From contig CAJFCJ010000012.1 of the NCBI GenBank assembly GCA_904063045.1, positions 868,001 through 932,000 on the forward strand: a stretch of DNA of 64,000 bases, read 5' to 3'. The translations under genes and the position numbers were made by a program. The notes beneath the pieces are model-generated. The model searched no databases. It was not told where the DNA came from and saw only the letters and a list, made by a program, of their open reading frames with translations. Origin of the DNA: Dimorphilus gyrociliatus (Eukaryota > Animalia > Annelida). This document shows, piece by piece, positions 27,254 through 37,170 of the stretch (the first letter of the stretch is position 1; the number at the start of each line of letters is the position of its first letter).

Positions 27254-29440
27254 ATGTTTTATGCACATTTCGTATTAAGCAAAAAAGGGCCACTAGCCAA
27301 AGTTTGGTTAGCGGCCCATTGGGATAAGAAATTAACTAAAGCTCATGTTTTTGAAACGAATATCAACAACAGTGTTCAAGCTATCTTACAACCAAAGGTA
27401 TGTTGAAATATTTTTATTTACGACATACCAACAATATGGGATCATTAATTTTTTTCAGGTTAAAATGGCTTTACGTACATCAGGACACTTGCTTCTTGGT
27501 GTAGTAAGAATATACTCAAGAAAAGCAAAATATTTACTAGCTGATTGCAATGAAGCTTTTGTTAAAATTAAAATGGCCTTCCGTCCTGGAATGGTTGATC
27601 TACCCAGTGGACAACAGCAAGCCTCTGTTGCAGCAATTACTCTTCCAGAAACTTTTCATGATTTTGAATCCACTATGGCAGATTTAGCGTAAGTTATTCG
27701 AAAGTTTAAAAAGGAAAGTATTTTTAATGGGCCACATATTCATTCCTTTAGCGATTTCGACGTCCAAGCCCAACTTTCAGTTAATCAAAGTAAACCCGAA
27801 GATATTACAATGAAAGAAGATTTAGGGACGATCTCATTTAACGAATTTGGAGGAGGTGATATGGAATTTGATGACAGTCAAATGTTACGAGAAGATTTCG
27901 ATGAAAATTTCCTGCAACCCTATTCATCTGATGCCGACAAAATGGATATAGGTGGAGCAGGTGCTGATGATGATCTAGGGCAATATATTGGTAATTAAAG
28001 GAATTTCTCTCATATCTCGGATATATATTATGTCATTTTATGATTTTCTAGGTGATGATGACCCATGTCCAGCTGACGACTTGTCATCAGACGATGATAA
28101 CAACGACGATCTTGGTAATATAGAACACGCAGATTTAATTGGAGCAGATGGCAGTGGTTTTATGACCCACGAAACTGGCAACATTTTTGAAGATCCTGCG
28201 CCACCCTCTGAGCCTCCAAAAGATTTTGACATGACTACCGGTGCACCGAAAGACACAACTGTTAATCAACCAAACGTAACGGCAATGACAGACAGAAGTG
28301 CTGTCCCTGATCAAACTACCCTTGTTACAAATGATAGAGAAGCGTTTGCTTTAGAGCCGTTAGATGTCACGAGTGTCCATGGTTAGTAAAGTTTATAATT
28401 TTGTTTTTCAATTATTATAACTTTTCGATTTAGGTGGAGTTGAAAGGCGAACAAAGAGAAAACGACGTCTAATCGTTGATGAACAAAAAGGAATCTCATC
28501 TGAAACCATGAAACTACAACTCTCCGATACCGGGGATATTTCTACATCTCTTGATTTGGCTCCTCCAACAAAACGCCTTATGTTATGGAAAGAAACTGGG
28601 GGTGTTGAAAAATTGTTTGCCTTGTCGGCTGATCCAATTTGTTCAAAAACTATAAATCAAGTAATTGCTATTTAAAGTTTAATTATTTAATTTAATAATT
28701 TAAAACTATTTCTTTACAGCATTTTATCAACAGTATGGTCACCAGAGCAATTGGTGATGATGACGATGATATTCGCAACGAATTACAAGTTCCAGGTGGT
28801 TTTGGAGACATAGAAACAGCTAGAAATAGAGCCTCAGTCCGTTCATCAGTCAACGACAGGAGTTTAGCAGATGTGGAAAGAGTCAGACATGATTCCTCAG
28901 TTTTGTCGGTTCCAAATATTGATCAAGATTCAACCCTTCAAAGATCAAGAGAAGACGAATCTTTGGCACATATTTCAGATTTGCCTCTGATAAACGACAC
29001 ATTACCTCCCGACGTTGATATTAACCCAGCTAGTGTGGGTACAGTGGAAGATATATTTGATATGGCTTTGGACAGCGTTGCTCCACCAAGTGTTGGTGGA
29101 GATTCAATAGGTGGAGAAGAAAATGAAGAGGAACAAGAAGAAAGACGTTGGGGCAAGAGAACACATCAGTTAATTCGAATGATTGATTCTAAAATGGATT
29201 ACTCCGAAAAGTTATCGTTTAGTTCATTGCTGCTAAAGAACAATAGAAAACAGGTTAGTTTTTTTGATATTTTATAAAAGCAAATCATTAAATGTATCTT
29301 CTATTTTAAAGGTGGCTTCAAAATTCTACACTCTATTGGTTCTAAAGAAGAATCAAGCTATAAATATTGAACAGGATACACCTTTTGGTGAATTAATAAT
29401 ATCCAGAGGACAAAATTTCCAATCTTGCATGACAGCTTAA
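27254..29440 (+). CDS. RAD21: Cohesin kleisin subunit RAD21 (multi-exon)
   Basis: [35 protein letters not shown]; [43 protein letters not shown]; [10 protein letters not shown]; C-terminal [18 protein letters not shown]...[10 protein letters not shown]. Confidence 0.97.
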
Positions 29441-29733
29441 ATATTTTCCAAGCTGATAATGCCAAATTGTTTTGGTTTTAAAAGTAAATATATATATATA
29501 TGTACATGTTTTTATTCGTTCTAGTTAGAAAAATTTGCATGTTTGGCGACGATTCAGCCTACATTGTGCTTTTATGTAAATAATTCTTTTTATTAGATAG
29601 TTGATACATTTCACTACGTTTATAATGTTTGTTATGCTTATTTATTTGGCTTATATTTGAAAAACTTTCTGAAACTGTTATTTGTAAATTTCCATTTATC
29701 ATACACGAAACATGTGATTTTTATCGTAAAAAA

Positions 29734-30282
29734 TTAATAAACGTGAACCATGCCGTACAAAAAAGTCCAGAATAGTACATAGGTCTGAAAACAAAAATGA
29801 TCGTTAAGGAGAATATTTAAATGTTAATTAAGCAACTATTTAGATTTGGCTAATATTTTTTTAAAGGATACGAATAATCCACCAAATAGTCCGTTAGTTA
29901 GAATTGTCCATTTGCTAATGAAATATCGATTCCAGTCAGAACCAATCTTTATCCATAGAATGATCTGTAATCCATTAAATGATGGTATGTAGACAAAAAT
30001 TTTAGAGCCTATTAACGCAATTTATACTTACACTTAGAGCCAAAGAGGCTATGAAATAGAAAATAAACCCATATAACCCTGTTAAGCCTAAGATTCCCGC
30101 TGCACCGCCTGAGAGAGCAGACATGGATGTCCTAGAATACTCCAGTATAGCACTATTATTCCTTATAGAGAGTTCATTATATAAAATATCTACAAATATA
30201 ATTGTTATAATTACATTACATTACTAGTTTGATATAGTTTTCAACCTTTTTTTTGGTTTTTATCATCACCTTCGGACGCCAT
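29734..30282 (-). CDS. EMC6: ER membrane protein complex subunit 6 (four exons; missed by ORF track)
   Basis: Spliced translation [65 protein letters not shown]|[15 protein letters not shown]...GLFGGLF|[16 protein letters not shown] matches EMC6 hallmark segments. Confidence 0.97.
29785..29871 (-). other. U12-type (minor spliceosome) GT-AG intron in EMC6
   Basis: Donor GTATCCTTT and branch site TCCTTAAC 18 nt before the AG, both matching U12 consensus. Confidence 0.85.
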
Positions 30283-30456
30283 TTTAAGATTCCACTAATC
30301 TGGAATAGTGTTCCGCACTAAATATTAATCAGTAAATTCATTCAAGGGCTCGCAGTACAGTCAGCTGCCAAGATGGGGATAGATTTTTCTTTCGTCTGTT
30401 CAAGATATATTCAGGAAATAGTTTTACATCTGGACTCATAAATTAAACATCTCATC

Positions 30457-32860
30457 ATGCATAAATCTCTGACTATTCCGTGTGATCAACTGACTCAAAG
30501 AGGTTGGTAAAGCATAAAGAAATTACTCATTTCTTCATCTTTGCTTTTATCAGGTGGAAACTCGGGGGAACTTTTCGATCAATTAAAGTTAGTTATGTTA
30601 AACTTTTATTCTTAAATACATATGGGTACTTAGTCCAACTATAAATAGCAAAGTCATCAGTATTTATATCAATAAATAGTTTTGGATTTGTGTATAAAAG
30701 ATTATTCAAATTTGGTCTATTTCTAATTGAAAATTTAAATTCTTGATTCATACTGAATAGTTGTGATTAAATTTTGTGCTTAATTTTTAAGGGGAGAGGC
30801 ATTTTGTAAGAAAGAGAAAACGAAATCTTCTTCCTTTGAACACTCAGTTGACATGATGAGAAAAATGTTTGATTATGCGTGCAATTCAAAATTATGTGAT
30901 GTTATACTCGTAGCTGGAGACAAAAAAATTGGCGCTCATAAATTAGTTTTGTCAGTTGCAAGCGATTATTTTAGTGCAATGTTCAGTGGGAAAATGCAAG
31001 AATCAATTGCAAGTGAAGTACTTATCAGAAAATTCTCGTTTATTCAAATATTTACTTATATGTTATAATTTAATTCTTTTAATAAGGTTACCCTTGAAAA
31101 TGTTGATCCAAATGCCCTATTCTCTCTCATCCGTTTTATTTATACCGGTAATTTATTTCATTTAACTGATTAACTATTCTAATTCGACAATTTATATTTG
31201 AATATTTCAGGTGTATTAGAAATAAAAGAAGATAACGTTGAATCTCTACTCGCTACGGCATGCATGCTGCAATTGGATAAAGTTAGGGATTATTGTTGTA
31301 GCTTTTTAATGAAAGAACTGCACCTGTCCAATTGTATCGGCATTCGTAAATTTGCCTCCCTCCACTCATGCACCGAATTATTCGAGGCTGCAACTAATTT
31401 TTTTATGGTACTTATATTTTATGCAACTGTCAGAAAACTGTTAGTTTTATTCATTTAATATCCCACAGGATCATTTTACTAATGTTGTACATCATGAGGA
31501 ATTCTTTACTTTAGACGTAGAGGATTTCGGGCAGATTCTTGCCTCGGATGATTTAAATGTTAACTCGGAAGAAGAAGTTTTTGATATTTTAGTTAAATGG
31601 ATTCAATATGATGAAGCGGAAAGAAAACAACACGTTCCATATTTATTACATTTTTTGAGATTACCGCTTTTGAATCCAAATTTTCTAGTTGATCACGTCC
31701 AATCGCATGGTCTGGTCTCAAACAACAGCGAATGTTCCAAACTTTTTGTTGAAGCTCTCAAATATCATTTATTAGCAGAGAGAAGGCAATCATTACAAGT
31801 AAATAAATAGAATTTTCTTTTTGGCGCTTTCATTCTATTTTCTATTTTTTTCTTTATTTCTAAAGAATTCCAGAACGAAACCGAGAAAGTCAACAGTTGG
31901 TCATTTATATACTGTTGGTGGAACTGATCCTAATAGTGGCTGTACTACTATTGAAAAATACCAACTACGATGTGACAAATGGGAAGTTGTTGCTAAAATG
32001 TCTGGTAGAAGATTACAATTCGGTGTAGCTGTTCTGGATAATAAATTATACGTTGTTGGAGGTAGAGATGGTTTGAAGACAATGAACACAGTCGAATGTT
32101 TGGACCCGTTGAGCAATCTATGGTCTTTCATGCCATCTATGAATACTCACAGACATGGATTGGGTTAGTTCAATTTTCGAATCAAGTACTAGTATATTCT
32201 TTTGTTATATTACTAATTAATTATTTTTCAGGTGTTGCTGAATTAAATGGTCCTTTGTATGCGGTTGGCGGACATGATGGTTGGTCCTACTTGAACACAG
32301 TTGAAAGATGGGACCCAAGCGCTCGAAGTTGGAACTATGTTTCACCCATGACAACTTCAAGGAGTTGCGCTGGTGTAGCTGTGCTAGATTCCAGATTATA
32401 TGTCGTTGGAGGACGAGATGGATCATCTTGCTTAAAGTCAATGGAGTGCTTTGATCCGCACACCAATAGATGGACAGTTTGTGCCCCAATGAATAAAAGG
32501 AGAGGAGGTATAGGGGTGGCAACTTTAAATATGTTTTTATATGCTGTTGGAGGGCATGGTGCACCATCTAATGATCCATTATCTACTAAATTAGATTTAG
32601 CAGAGAGATACGACCCGAAAACAGATACTTGGACAACTATTGCTCCTATATCTTCGGGTAGAGATGCTGTTGGTGCTTGTGTTTTAGCCAGTAAATTGTA
32701 TGTAGTTGGTGGGTTTGATTGTCAGTATTTAGATATCGTTGAACGGTACGATCCGGAGACAGATGAATGGGAAAAAGTTTGTAATTTGAAGCAGGCTAGG
32801 GCTGGGGCTTGCTTGGTGCATGTTCCAAATACAAATAGCCTGCAAATTGATAGCTTGTGA
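30457..32860 (+). CDS. KLHL5: Kelch-like BTB-BACK-Kelch protein, KLHL1/4/5 group (multi-exon)
   Basis: [21 protein letters not shown] (BTB); KPRKSTVG...[31 protein letters not shown]; [20 protein letters not shown]; ends DSL-TGA at 32858-32860. Start at 30457 inferred from in-frame splicing. Confidence 0.93.
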
Positions 32861-33250
32861 CAAGTACAGCCTCACACGATAAATATAGCAGAAAATATTT
32901 GTCATATTTGCTCATCATTAAAATTACCTATCTTTCAACAACAATCTCATTCATGTGTCAACAATCTTTATCGTGATAGGTCGTCAAGAAATAATCAAAA
33001 CATACAAAGCACCTTAATAGAATCACAAGACAACTTGGGTAAAGATCCTAAGAACAAAAGACAAATGGTCAATTCCATGAACAATTTCACCCAAACTTTC
33101 AAAAGCGACAATGCGCTTGAACCAATTTGGTTAAAGCCTAGGCCACTACCTCCACCTCCACAAAAACACAAATGCACGAGAAAGATAAAAATATTTTTTT
33201 CGCAATGTAAACTAACGAGACAGCATGAAAATAAAAAGCTAAGTGATTAA
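32861..33250 (+). CDS. Candidate 129-aa stop-codon readthrough extension of KLHL5
   Basis: Frame after TGA stays open (QVQPHTINIAENICHIC...KPRPLPPPPQKHKC...KKLSD*) to TAA 33248-33250; ORF-track entry 33035..33250 is its 3' part in the same frame. Confidence 0.7.
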   Translation, partial: QVQPHTINIAENICHICSSLKLPIFQQQSHSCVNNLYRDRSSRNNQNIQSTLIESQDNLGKDPKNKRQMVNSMNNFTQTFKSDNALEPIWLKPRPLPPPPQKHKCTRKIKIFFSQCKLTRQHENKKLSD

Positions 33251-33266
33251 TGGTATCGTGTGAGGC
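32869..33266. repeat. 13-bp perfect inverted repeat (32869-32881 / 33254-33266), imperfectly extendable to ~21 bp
   Basis: gcctcacacgata and tatcgtgtgaggc are exact reverse complements; flanks caagtaca / ctatactag pair partially. Confidence 0.9.
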
Positions 33267-34736
33267 CTATACTAGTTAATAATATAAAGTTAAGTTTATT
33301 ATGTCACAATGATAATTTATCACGAGAAACATACAAATTCCAATGTGAAAAGATGTTTACAATCATAATTGCTTTATACGTTAATAAATATTCCAAGTTG
33401 GTTTTGTAAGATAATTTATTCTTTCAATATTTATAATACATTTAAGTATCTTGTATGATATGTCTCATTTTAGTATACTTTTTAATTATATAATTTTCTA
33501 AACTTGCAGAAAGGAAATCTGTGCTAAACACTGGAATTTACAGTTTTAGAGATTTCCTATAAATTTTCATATTCGATTTTCTCTATTTTGAGAATGAAGT
33601 TAATTATGGCATTTTCCTGCATGCTAACAAAGAAAACGTCATTTAATGAATCTCAATCTAAATAAAACTGTATGGGGAAAAGAAGTCTAATGAACATTAC
33701 CTGCTTCAAGTCACTCAATCGTGCAGACTTTACAATAGTGACACAGTATCAAAAGAATAACTTAAAGCCTCTATTCATTACATCGCTTAAATATATCACT
33801 TGGGTACTCTAATATACTCTTTCTAAAATTTTTGTTAAAGTAAAGCTTCAAAATGAACTTTTCCATTTTGAAATATTGTTGAAAAACCGACTTATCAGTT
33901 GTAAAATGACTTTTAGATTGCTTTTACGATGTTATTCTTTGTTTAATGAGAGGAAGTTATTTTTACGTGTTAGTGATATTGATTTTGCGTTATCAGTGAT
34001 CTCTAAAAACAAAGTTTGCATTAATTTGAATACTTTCGTTCAAAGAAATTCTATATGCTAAATAACTTTAATTATATGAAGTTAGCGAAAGAGATACAAT
34101 TTTCATTAAATTAAACTTTGAATATGAAATTTTCGTTGGGACTTTTATGCGAAAGCGGAAGCTAGTTCAACGGAAGTAGAGGTGCGGAGATAAAATAAAT
34201 TGGTAAAAGATATACAATGATTATGCATTTTTCATGGAAATGTCATGTATGCTATAAAAAAAGTGACATATAACTGTTCCAATTTTAATACAATTACGCT
34301 AGGGTTACCAAGATAGTTCTTTGTTTCGAAGGATTAATTTGTTAAACCTCTGCTCATTGGCTACTTCGTTGACAAAAAAGTCAATATTTTTACAACAAAT
34401 ATTAATTTTTTTGTTAAATCTCTCATATAATAAAGAATTTATTTATAAAGTAAAGAAAATTACATAAATTAGCAGTCTTTTCAACGCCATTTGTTCTAGA
34501 TTTTTCCAATCGAACGCCACGGCATTCTACTTCCGCTGCATATTTAAACCAATCAGCTACTGCCTAATATAATATTTACTCTTTAAGCAGACGACAAGAC
34601 GGTTTCACCGAATTGTAAAACGTGCTTTTTAAAAGGTAATATTAACTGAATTATGAATTTTTTTAAAGTATACTAGTTTATGAATAATATTATAAGATAG
34701 ATCTTAATTAATTTGCCCTCTTAAAACAGAAACGAA

Positions 34737-37170
34737 ATGAAGAAGAGCCTTCTCATTCTTTTGCTAGTAGGCCTACTAGCCTTCTCGAGCGTTCGATGCG
34801 AAATTGAAAATGATGATACGGTTGAAGACGACGAAACAATGGAAACTGAGGATGATGCTATAGATGAACCGAAAGAGCCTATTGTACCAAAATCTGAAAG
34901 AGTAAGTTTCATTTTAAATCTGTAAACCATCAATAACATCTGTTTCTTTCTCTAAAGCCTGATTTTAAACCTCCAAAATTGGCTGGACCGGCCTACTTTC
35001 ACGAATCGTTTCTTAGTGCTGATGTATTAGGATCCACGTGGAAATTATCAAAGGCCAAAAAGGACGATGCTGACGAGTCTATTTCCAAATATGATGGAGA
35101 ATGGACAGTAGAAGAAGGAGAAGCTGCCTTGAAAGGAGACTTTGGCTTACATTTGAAATCAAAAGCTAAGCATCATGCTATCGCTTCCAAATTGACAGAG
35201 TCATTCAAATTCGATGGGAAGCCACTTATCGTTCAGTAAGTAGTATAGAATTTTAAGTATTAATCGTTAAATATAAACCATTAATGCATACAGATATGAA
35301 GTGAAATTTCAAAACGGTCAAGAATGTGGCGGTGGTTACGTCAAATTGCTCAGTGATAGTTCTAATTTAGATTTGGTTAATATTTTTTATTTTCATTATA
35401 GTATACCTTCTGTATTTTAATTAACTTTATTCTATTTGGCTATTAAACAGAGCAAATTTATGGATAAAACTCCATATACGATAATGTTTGGGCCTGATAG
35501 ATGCGGACAAGATAGCAAATTGCATTTTATCTTCCGGCACAAAAACCCGGTTACTGGCGAATATGAGGAAAAGCATGCCAAAAAACCTACTACCTCTTTT
35601 GAACATGTTTTTGATAAGAAAACTCATTTGTACAGATTGGGTAAAATAAATAATTTATTTTTTTTTTCAATAAATACAATGTAACATTTACTTTCCAGTT
35701 GTGAATGCCGATAACACTTTTGAAATATTCATCGATCAAACTTTAATTAATTCAGGAAGCCTTTTAGAGGATTTTGAGTGAGTACTTGTCTCTTTGTACG
35801 AATGTTTTAAAACTTTTTTGTGAATTTGTAGACCAGCCGTCAACCCTCCGAAAGAAATAGTCGATCCAGAAGATAAGAAGCCAGAAGATTGGGATGAACG
35901 TGAAAAGTAAATATTGAATTAAATCTTTTTTTCATATGTAATCTTTTATTAAAAACCAGAATACCTGACCCAGAAGCCAAAAAACCTGAAGACTGGTATG
36001 ATAATGCTTATTTACCTAGTTTAACAAAATTGTAACAATTAATATTATAAAGGGATGAAACTCAACCTGAAAAAATTGAAGATGTTGATGCCACAATGCC
36101 CAGTGGTTGGTTGGAAGAAGAAAGTGAGCTAATTGCTGACCCAAAAGCTGAAAAACCAGCAGATTGGGATGATGATATGGATGGCGAATGGGAAGCACCT
36201 ATGATTAGTAAGTTTAAGCTCAGGGCTGTAGATTTTTATTAACTAGGATAATTTAATCAGATAACCCAAAATGTGAATCTGCTCCGGGATGCGGAAAATG
36301 GACTCGCCCCATGGTTGAAAATCCCGCTTACAAAGGAAAATGGAAGGCTCCTCTCATTTCAAATCCCGATTACAAAGTAAGAAATTCAATACAAAAATGC
36401 AACTTAGATATATTTTAACTCTTTTTTAGGGAAAATGGACTCCTCGTATAATCGAAAATCCTAATTATTTCGAAGATAAGGAACCATATAAAATGACTCC
36501 AATAGGTGCTGTTGGCTTGGAATTGTGGTCTATGTCTGACAATATTGTCTTTGACAACTTCCTCATCACTCACTCAAAAGCTGTTGCGGATGAGTGGATA
36601 TCTGAAACTTATACTTTAAAACATACTCAAGAGTTAAGCACCGCTAGTGGAGGTGAAAACGTTTTCCAATGGCTGGTTAAAGCTGCCGAAGAAAGAAAAT
36701 GGTTATACGCCGTTTATATAATGGTCGTGCTCTTGCCTATTGTATTGCTTTCTGTCTGGTGTTGCCCGAATAGCGGACCAGGAGTTAAAGTGAGTATTAT
36801 AAAGTAGCATATCTTCATATACTGGAAGCTATTACTTTACAGGCTAAAGAGTTAGCCAAAAAAAAGACTGATGAGCCAACCGCTGATGATGAAGTTGACG
36901 AGGATGTGGAGAATGAAGGAGAAGACAAGAGTGAAAGCGATACCCAAAACGAAGCAGAGGCTAAAACTGAGGGCGGAGGTGATTCAAAGAAAAAAGCTTC
37001 CAAGAGTGCTTTAGATGCCACTAATGAAGACGACGAAACCGTAAGTTTTAATTTTTATAAGTTTTCGTAAATCATTTTATCTTATATTTCTTTAGCCTAA
37101 CGAGCCTGAACAAGAAGGCGATTCTAGCGCTAAAAGTACCCGTAGACGAGCAAAGGCTCGCAAAGATTAA
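34737..37170 (+). CDS. CANX: Calnexin (multi-exon)
   Basis: Signal peptide; [11 protein letters not shown]; [19 protein letters not shown]; [12 protein letters not shown]; KPEDWDE repeats; GLELWSM; TM; acidic tail ending RRRAKARKD*. Confidence 0.97.

Follow-up and report, generated by a model that had tools for sequence, protein, structure and literature searches.

A candidate for lineage-specific programmed stop-codon readthrough in a KLHL1/4/5-type kelch gene of Dimorphilus gyrociliatus

In a kelch-type gene of the annelid Dimorphilus gyrociliatus, programmed readthrough of the stop codon may have arisen within a single lineage, a reading that the sequence leaves evenly poised. The gene was analysed within a window of 64,000 nucleotides (the whole stretch of DNA studied, to which all coordinates refer). 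Its coding region closes at a UGA that is followed in the same frame by 129 sense codons, and the open stretch is bracketed by the two arms of a predicted long-range RNA stem. The elements concerned are the following.

30457..32857, + strand, BTB-BACK-kelch coding region of 606 aa, starting at ATG 30457
30400-30500, 30552-30587, 30792-31017, 31087-31146, 31210-31406, 31468-31798, 31866-32162 and 32231-32857, + strand, exon blocks of the kelch gene
32858..32860, + strand, UGA stop closing the kelch ORF, candidate leaky stop, the same in RNA contigs X2, X3, X4 and X6
32861..32866, + strand, CAA-GUA hexanucleotide after the stop, with C at +4
32861..33247, + strand, in-frame extension of 129 sense codons, N/Q/K/S-rich, containing RPLPPPP, single-copy in the genome
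32869..32881, + strand, 5' arm of the perfect 13-bp stem, 8-nt spacer from the UGA, duplex -22.4 kcal/mol
32895..32903, + strand, one unit of a 9-nt tandem duplication that gives rise to a 'CHIC' motif, missing in the X6 relative
33248..33250, + strand, UAA closing the extension
33254..33266, + strand, 3' arm of the perfect 13-bp stem, beginning 3 nt past the UAA
33269..33277, + strand, outer imperfect helix of 4+4 bp, pairing with 32858-32866 (UGA and spacer) in MFE and centroid

Under the favoured reading, translation would mostly end at UGA 32858 and yield the ordinary 606-aa kelch protein of CUL3-adaptor type, and a minority of ribosomes would accept a near-cognate tRNA at the UGA. Such decoding would be favoured by the poor termination context UGA-CAA-GUA and by the 13-bp stem, which with its 8-nt spacer and 372-nt loop would stand at the mRNA entrance of the ribosome whenever the UGA occupies the A site. 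Ribosomes that read through would add a 129-residue N/Q/K-rich, probably disordered tail ending at UAA 33248. A longer form of the kelch protein is plausible on these features, and from them we infer that readthrough may occur, at some level, and that the tail may be of use.

Gene structure and product

Kelch-gene exon junctions were exact within 1-2 nt, and their GT..AG joints were seen in three spliced RNA contigs. Once joined, the exons gave an open frame beginning at ATG 30457, and a TAA lay in frame upstream of it. Pfam analysis of the 606-aa protein gave BTB, BACK and six Kelch_1 stretches (2 + 4), and the best named matches were KLHL5, KLHL4 and KLHL1 (56-67% identity). The N-terminus is short, the BTB domain beginning near residue 45. 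Its domains and matches place the gene among the BTB-BACK-kelch adaptors of KLHL1/4/5 type; an earlier sequence-only reading of this DNA had named it KLHL5, which was borne out at the level of that type.

Mature mRNA and 3' ends

Three further elements were placed on the transcript behind the stop.

33230..33235, + strand, AATAAA inside the end of the extension, crossed by every RNA contig, with no sign of use
33383..33388, + strand, AATAAA before the likely main 3' end; contigs X3 and X4 end at 33394 and 33455
33406..33509, + strand, optional GT..AG intron of a long 3'UTR isoform, with joint 33405/33510 in X2 only

The three spliced RNA contigs, and contig X6 from a worm in a coral metatranscriptome, carried the TGA unchanged and were unspliced there. 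Since the spliced contigs also extended past both stem arms, reaching 33394-33455 or 33889, a TGA created by assembly error, a splice removing the stop and a poly(A) site always upstream of the 3' stem arm were all excluded. The RNA checks called for by the sequence-only reading thus came out in its favour: the stop is real in RNA, it is not spliced out, and the mRNA continues beyond both arms. Its suggestion that the AATAAA at 33230-33235 could act as a poly(A) switch was retained for the presence of the signal and dropped for the switch, because the contigs cross it and RNA depth falls after about 33400-33455, which places the 3' ends near 33394-33455. The X2 isoform with the 33405/33510 joint continued to ~33889; continued coding in this spliced isoform was considered and rejected, as it would give merely 12 further codons.

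Stop codon and its context

The hexanucleotide CAA-GUA conforms to CAR-NBA, a consensus for readthrough (Namy et al. 2001, cited by PMC4446449); given C at +4, the chance of the rest of CAR-NBA was ~0.04 with the composition of the window. UGA-C was present as previously claimed, and it agrees with published readthrough stimulators (PMC3159437), as do the 8-nt spacer and the long-loop stem. UGA 32858 shares its codon position with the stop of an 81%-identical relative. The stop position is therefore ancestral and the 129-codon ORF is not the product of a recent nonsense allele, an origin excluded by termination of the relative at the identical codon.

Open frame behind the stop

TGA 32858-32860, the 129 open codons and TAA 33248-33250 were found at every coordinate given earlier. 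The stretch holds no stop in frame 0 versus 10 and 11 stops in the other two forward frames. The chance of such an open run was recomputed as ~1e-4 from the segment's own composition, or 1e-5 to 3e-5 when the flanks or the window supplied the composition, in line with the previous estimate of near 1e-4 or lower. Across ~14,000 genes, 0.4-2 post-stop open runs of this length are expected genome-wide, so that the 129-codon ORF alone is not significant; ORF, stem and stop context combined are significant. The segment is composed of 42% A and 21% C, compared with 35% A and 13% C downstream.

No other genomic copy of the tail was found by DNA, protein and pattern searches of the worm's own genome. 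No homologue was detected in a word-indexed search of 5.8e9 proteins or in an exhaustive HMMER search of 1.84e9 representatives, no Pfam family was assigned, the Atlas feature search returned no homologue, and language-model recognition was low. A single-sequence AlphaFold model was unconfident (pLDDT 39). Codon usage and position-specific composition of the tail were UTR-like and unlike the CDS of this genome, and codon-usage scoring gave no coding signal in any tail frame in a rough test that had one training exon out of frame. Of the long isoform proposed earlier, the open frame was upheld, and the tail was without homologue, Pfam family, coding-like codon usage or confident fold. The CxxC motif ascribed to the tail is likewise present and arises from the 9-nt tandem duplication that the ~98% relative lacks.

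Long-range stem

The perfect 13-bp stem between 32869-32881 and 33254-33266 proved real as complementarity, and its imperfect outer extension by 4+4 pairs takes in the UGA. The 13-bp inverted repeat brackets the open stretch with a loop of 372 nt, and the extended duplex of 32858-81 with 33254-77 was calculated at -26.7 kcal/mol. When the local 600 nt were simulated with a Markov model, 7.5e-4 of trials contained a perfect stem of at least 13 bp with its 5' arm beginning 3-15 nt after the stop. The arm 13-mer was found at only these two sites in the 78-Mb genome, with 1-mismatch copies at control level. About 0.009 inverted repeats equally rich in G+C are expected per 64 kb, and the 64-kb window showed no excess of such repeats.

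The stem was present in both MFE and centroid (z = -3.75). Pair probabilities were ~1.0 for eight of the 13 pairs and 0.15-0.94 at both ends, for a fold from the stop onward only. When at least 160 nt of upstream CDS was included, other pairings beat the stem by 5.6 kcal/mol. The 13-bp stem 8 nt after the stop is a prediction, with competing folds when upstream CDS is included.

Comparison with related worms

The X6 relative is ~98% identical and covers the first 74 of the 129 tail codons, the 3' stem arm lying outside that coverage. Its tail differs from the reference by three synonymous changes, one missense change and an in-frame 9-nt deletion at 32895 (four of the five differences classified), and the 5' stem arm is identical. 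The probability of at least three synonymous changes in four was 0.02-0.05, to be multiplied by 1/3 for the in-frame indel. Two of the synonymous changes precede the first in-frame start codon of the tail, which lies at 33035. The tail has 4-5 changes in 222 nt versus two synonymous changes in ~520 nt of CDS; its substitution rate roughly matches that of synonymous change in the CDS, so that by rate there is no sign of constraint.

In the 81%-identical relative, a TGA-TAA tandem stop stands at the same codon and is followed by further stops. This relative has no open frame behind the stop, its best stem consists of eight A/U pairs, and its sequence could not be aligned with the tail region. 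The tail is absent from a 64% orthologue. The sequence-only reading is weakened by this, the nearest available relative (81%) being without the tail. No further close relatives were retrieved with a 60-aa C-terminal query, exact-product look-ups and metagenome pattern scans, a result that says little. From these comparisons, the tail would appear to be former 3'UTR sequence, recruited once the lineage had separated from the 81% relative.

Alternative explanations

The segment may instead be ordinary untranslated 3'UTR, in which the 129-codon run is the genome's chance outlier and the helix has another role (mRNA stability, localisation or binding of a double-strand RNA-binding protein) or none. 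We hold this to be possible and rather doubtful. It is favoured by the expected number of runs of this length among ~14,000 genes, the UTR-like codon usage and composition, the orphan character of the tail, its lack of conservation in the 81% relative, the roughly neutral divergence from X6, and the finding that in some contexts other folds outdo the stem. An untranslated segment nevertheless calls for several independent coincidences, namely the ORF (1e-4), a stem with the canonical 8-nt spacer (7.5e-4), UGA-C and the rest of CAR-NBA (~0.04 each), and the synonymous-biased, in-frame pattern in X6 (~0.01-0.02). Improbable in our view is a relic at the DNA level, left just behind the stop by the insertion of an element bearing terminal inverted repeats, by an inverted duplication or by a template switch; the repeat would then mark where the event began and ended, and the enclosed ORF would be functionless. 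Such an origin would suit a repeat that brackets exactly the compositionally distinct segment, arms that are flanked by TA (the left end, TA-CAG, resembling Tc1/mariner-like ends) and the absence of the segment from the 81% relative; it would leave unexplained an end-to-end open frame in phase with the host stop. The single-copy state of segment and peptide, the arm 13-mer without another copy, 1-mismatch copies at no more than control level, the lack of transposase or other homology and the lack of repeat excess in the window also speak against it. A TIR transposon or MITE was rejected specifically, as multiple copies sharing terminal repeats were not found and only this locus was recovered.

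Still less probable is A-to-I editing, by which a duplex containing the UGA would serve as an ADAR substrate and conversion of UGA to UGG (Trp) in some transcripts would open the 129-codon tail. The A of the UGA has a 5' G neighbour, which ADAR disfavours, the outer helix is weak and A/U-rich, and position 32860 was A in contigs of four runs, although contigs hide minor variants. For editing it may be said that the UGA is base-paired in the predicted helix with its A opposite U, that the duplex runs to ~21 bp with small bulges, and that, according to Firth et al. (PMC3159437), editing may lie behind some readthrough candidates. The slightest chance is given to other means of bypass, comprising selenocysteine insertion, a minor splice form removing the stop, and independent initiation within the tail. 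Selenocysteine is encoded by UGA; a selenoprotein was rejected, since a SECIS search of 32600-34200 (a check that the sequence-only reading had proposed) gave no match up to E = 10 and the 81% relative has TGA-TAA at the same codon. For a splice, joining to an AG at 32868-69 would keep the frame, and a GT lies at 32857-58, yet all spliced contigs cross the stop unspliced. Independent initiation is opposed by the position of the first in-frame start codon, 33035, behind two synonymous X6 changes.

Known systems and significance

To our knowledge, insects and viruses offer well-documented cases of cellular readthrough with a defined RNA stimulator, and spiralians hardly any. The sole annelid readthrough proposal found was for a Platynereis neuropeptide precursor (PMC3890597). 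If readthrough of the kelch gene is true, it would provide a compact, tractable cassette of ~420 nt in a small-genome model worm, a snapshot of how 3'UTR gives rise to a readthrough extension, and a second, independent kelch-family adaptor produced in two forms. If it is false, the locus would be a warning that ORF length, stop context and stem may coincide. More tentatively, and with doubt prevailing, the full viral-type cassette (UGA, CAR-NBA, 8-nt spacer, long-range stem) may have been built de novo within the worm's own lineage, turning 3'UTR into the tail in convergence with Drosophila kelch. Because the helix would clamp the neighbourhoods of both stops together, the stimulator would be melted by any ribosome that reached the end of the tail, and the isoform ratio could be subject to feedback.

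Drosophila kelch undergoes UGA readthrough from ORF1 to ORF2 and has a predicted 3' stem of 14 bp with an 8-nt spacer and a 268-nt loop (Firth et al. 2011, PMC3159437). Both genes encode BTB-BACK-kelch adaptors and combine UGA, an 8-nt spacer, a stem of 13-14 bp and a long in-frame ORF behind the stop. The loop is 372 nt in the worm gene compared with 268 nt in the fly, and the stop context is UGA-CAA-GUA compared with UGA-AUG. The worm gene belongs to a different KLHL subfamily, since its best named matches are KLHL5, KLHL4 and KLHL1. In the fly, ORF2 and the stem are conserved in 12 Drosophila species and translation has been shown, whereas the predicted worm tail is an orphan of 129 codons that the nearest relative lacks.

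The alphavirus nsP3/nsP4 junctions (VEEV, EEEV, SINV) have UGA-C, with a stem (10-12 bp) that is set 8-12 nt from the stop and closes a loop of 101-154 nt, and alphavirus readthrough loops may hold further structure (PMC3159437). The worm gene resembles them in the UGA followed by C and in a comparable spacer and extended 3' stem; the alphavirus cases differ in being viral, in their shorter loops and in being backed by compensatory substitutions and reporter assays. In Anopheles and Drosophila, readthrough was gained in old genes long after gene birth, and structures were gained and lost (PMC5100048). The worm candidate is alike in affecting a pre-existing gene, but the insect cases rest on multi-species coding signatures and the worm tail on one ~98% relative covering 74 of 129 codons.

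The worm CAA-GUA, placed right after the stop, is likewise comparable to the CAR-NBA and CAR-YYA contexts of TMV and of yeast BSC4 and PDE2; those contexts were worked out in plant viruses and yeast, for the most part behind UAG (PMC4446449). The fit of CAA-GUA to CAR-NBA is an addition to the sequence-only reading, which had not contained it.

Kelch gene and transcripts

The UGA at 32858-32860, which ends a kelch gene, is a candidate for programmed stop-codon readthrough, to which we give roughly even chances; translation of the 129-codon tail behind it is predicted from sequence. The window is A+T-rich animal DNA (G+C 32%). The gene model was built on the GT..AG joints of three spliced RNA contigs, and genome-wide searches were run on the 77.9-Mb assembly (349 contigs). 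From ATG 30457, which is preceded by an in-frame TAA, the coding region is spread over at least eight exon blocks. Pfam finds a BTB domain, a BACK domain and six kelch repeats in the 606-aa product; its closest named relatives are KLHL5, KLHL4 and KLHL1, in keeping with the KLHL5-type gene named in the sequence-only reading. The N-terminus (30457-30587) is very short, with the BTB domain beginning near residue 45, and the long N-terminal region of vertebrate KLHL4/5 is missing.

Three runs (X2, X3 and X4) were taken as RNA assemblies because every intron is skipped in their contigs; transcripts are 100% identical between the 2017 and 2020 runs, which carry two organism labels, as expected if the species was renamed from Dinophilus gyrociliatus. 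All three have contigs with the TGA that stay unspliced from about 32231 to 33394, 33405 or 33455. This excludes both an assembly error and removal of the stop by splicing, and it places both arms of the stem described below on mature mRNA. Of the objections foreseen in the sequence-only reading, a splice skipping the stop and a poly(A) site always upstream of 33254 are thereby excluded. Its further idea, that AATAAA 33230 acts as a cleavage switch, found no sign of use in the RNA contigs, which could miss minor use. An X2 long isoform reaches about 33889-33942 at lower depth.

Features of the 3'UTR
33406-33509, + strand: optional intron (GT..AG joint), removed in X2 only
33383, + strand: AATAAA near the likely main 3' end, RNA depth falling beyond about 33400-33455

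Stop codon and open frame

TGA 32858-32860 is followed by 129 sense codons (32861-33247), beginning CAA GTA, until TAA 33248-33250, at the coordinates first proposed. CAA-GUA matches CAR-NBA, the readthrough hexanucleotide consensus directly 3' of the stop (PMC4446449). Stops number 0 in frame 0 and 10 and 11 in the other + frames, and the chance of an open frame 0 is about 1e-4 at the segment's own composition, which is distinct (A 42%, C 21% vs A 35%, C 13% downstream). Chance should leave 0.4-2 open runs as long as this one among about 14,000 genes, so the ORF by itself proves nothing. A SECIS element, suggested earlier as a check on selenocysteine, was not found around the stop and in the 3'UTR.

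Behind TAA 33248 the same frame is open for 52 more codons (33251-33409; chance about 0.01 at local composition) until TAA 33407-33409, which sits within the GTAAGA donor of the optional intron; splicing lengthens the frame by 12 codons, up to another stop.

The tail found no homologues in protein database searches (HMMER among them), no Pfam family and no paralogue in its own genome. Its codon usage is not coding-like, without G enrichment at first codon positions; language-model recognition is low and the predicted structure has a pLDDT of 39. RPLPPPP, outside X6 coverage, matches the RxxPxxP SH3-ligand pattern and is a candidate ligand.

Stem

The perfect 13-bp inverted repeat 32869-32881/33254-33266, reported in the sequence-only reading, was verified, with an 8-nt spacer and a 372-nt loop. 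Its duplex energy is -22.4 kcal/mol, or -26.7 kcal/mol with 4+4 outer pairs including UGA. The stem is present in the MFE and centroid structures of 32850-33285 (z = -3.75; 0/100 shuffles fold equally well), and with folding confined to RNA that starts at the stop, which is the state met by a terminating ribosome, the pairs at its centre come close to a probability of 1. Once at least 160 nt of upstream CDS are folded along, it loses by 5.6 kcal/mol to a local hairpin (32856-32866 with 32896-32906) and to pairing of the 3' arm with C-rich 33135-33167. The partner of the stop-codon region in that hairpin is a 9-nt duplicated stretch, absent from X6.

A perfect stem of at least 13 bp starting 3-15 nt past the stop arose in 7.5e-4 of Markov-simulation trials. 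Of the four non-microsatellite inverted repeats of such length in the window, all but this one are A/T-rich, and no repeat with at least 7 G/C appeared in simulations. In published readthrough cases the stop is followed by a spacer of 7-12 nt and a stem of 10-14 bp that closes a loop of 52-268 nt (Firth et al. 2011, PMC3159437). Drosophila kelch likewise combines UGA with an 8-nt spacer and has a 14-bp stem, whereas its loop, at 268 nt, is shorter (PMC3159437).

Related worms

X6, a 2024 coral metatranscriptome holding a ~98% identical worm, has a contig covering 32754-33082, thus the first part of the tail only. The CDS portion has 0 changes in 104 nt; the tail has three synonymous changes (ATA>ATC, GTC>GTT, GAT>GAC), one missense change (CCT>CAT, which turns Pro into His) and an in-frame loss of 9 nt that takes out one tandem-repeat copy. 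That deletion takes along 'CHIC', so the CxxC noted earlier stands in the window and is lost in X6. The probability of 3 or more synonymous changes in 4 is 0.02-0.05, with 4 of the 5 differences classified and the fifth near the contig end. Tail divergence (about 2%) is not below CDS synonymous divergence (estimated from 2 synonymous differences over about 520 nt); the type of change thus points faintly to coding constraint, whereas the rate gives no such sign.

P0001, the kelch protein of a more distant relative, is 81% identical across the last exon. Its genomic contig, L002, is syntenic with the window: Rad21-like, kelch, calreticulin and KH/Tudor genes share their order between L002 1-12627 and window 27900-36000. 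The P0001 ORF terminates at precisely this codon position, yet with TGA-TAA, followed by many stops and a best stem of 8 A/U pairs. The two kelch 3'UTRs gave no alignment, whereas the 5' region of calreticulin gave one of 659 nt at 71%. A 64% orthologue stops at TAA, followed by 39 chance codons. Since P0001 stops at the same codon and neither relative has the tail, the stop position is, on these comparisons, ancestral and the tail lineage-specific.

Weighing of explanations

Programmed readthrough has against it that the tail is young and orphan, that its composition is UTR-like and that the stem depends on folding context. If this were an ordinary 3'UTR in which ORF and stem arose by chance, a single gene would have to combine several independent accidents: the open frame, a stem at the canonical spacing, a UGA followed by C, a match to the remainder of CAR-NBA, and the pattern of differences in X6. 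Insertion of an element bracketed by the 13-bp repeat would account for the repeat but leaves the end-to-end open frame unaccounted for, and fails the copy-number test (the arm 13-mer has two sites in the whole genome, both at the stem). A-to-I editing and other routes of stop bypass have little support.

X6 spliced transcripts also cover 30468-31666. They suggest a close lineage of Dimorphilus that inhabits corals or coral tanks and would readily supply comparative data.
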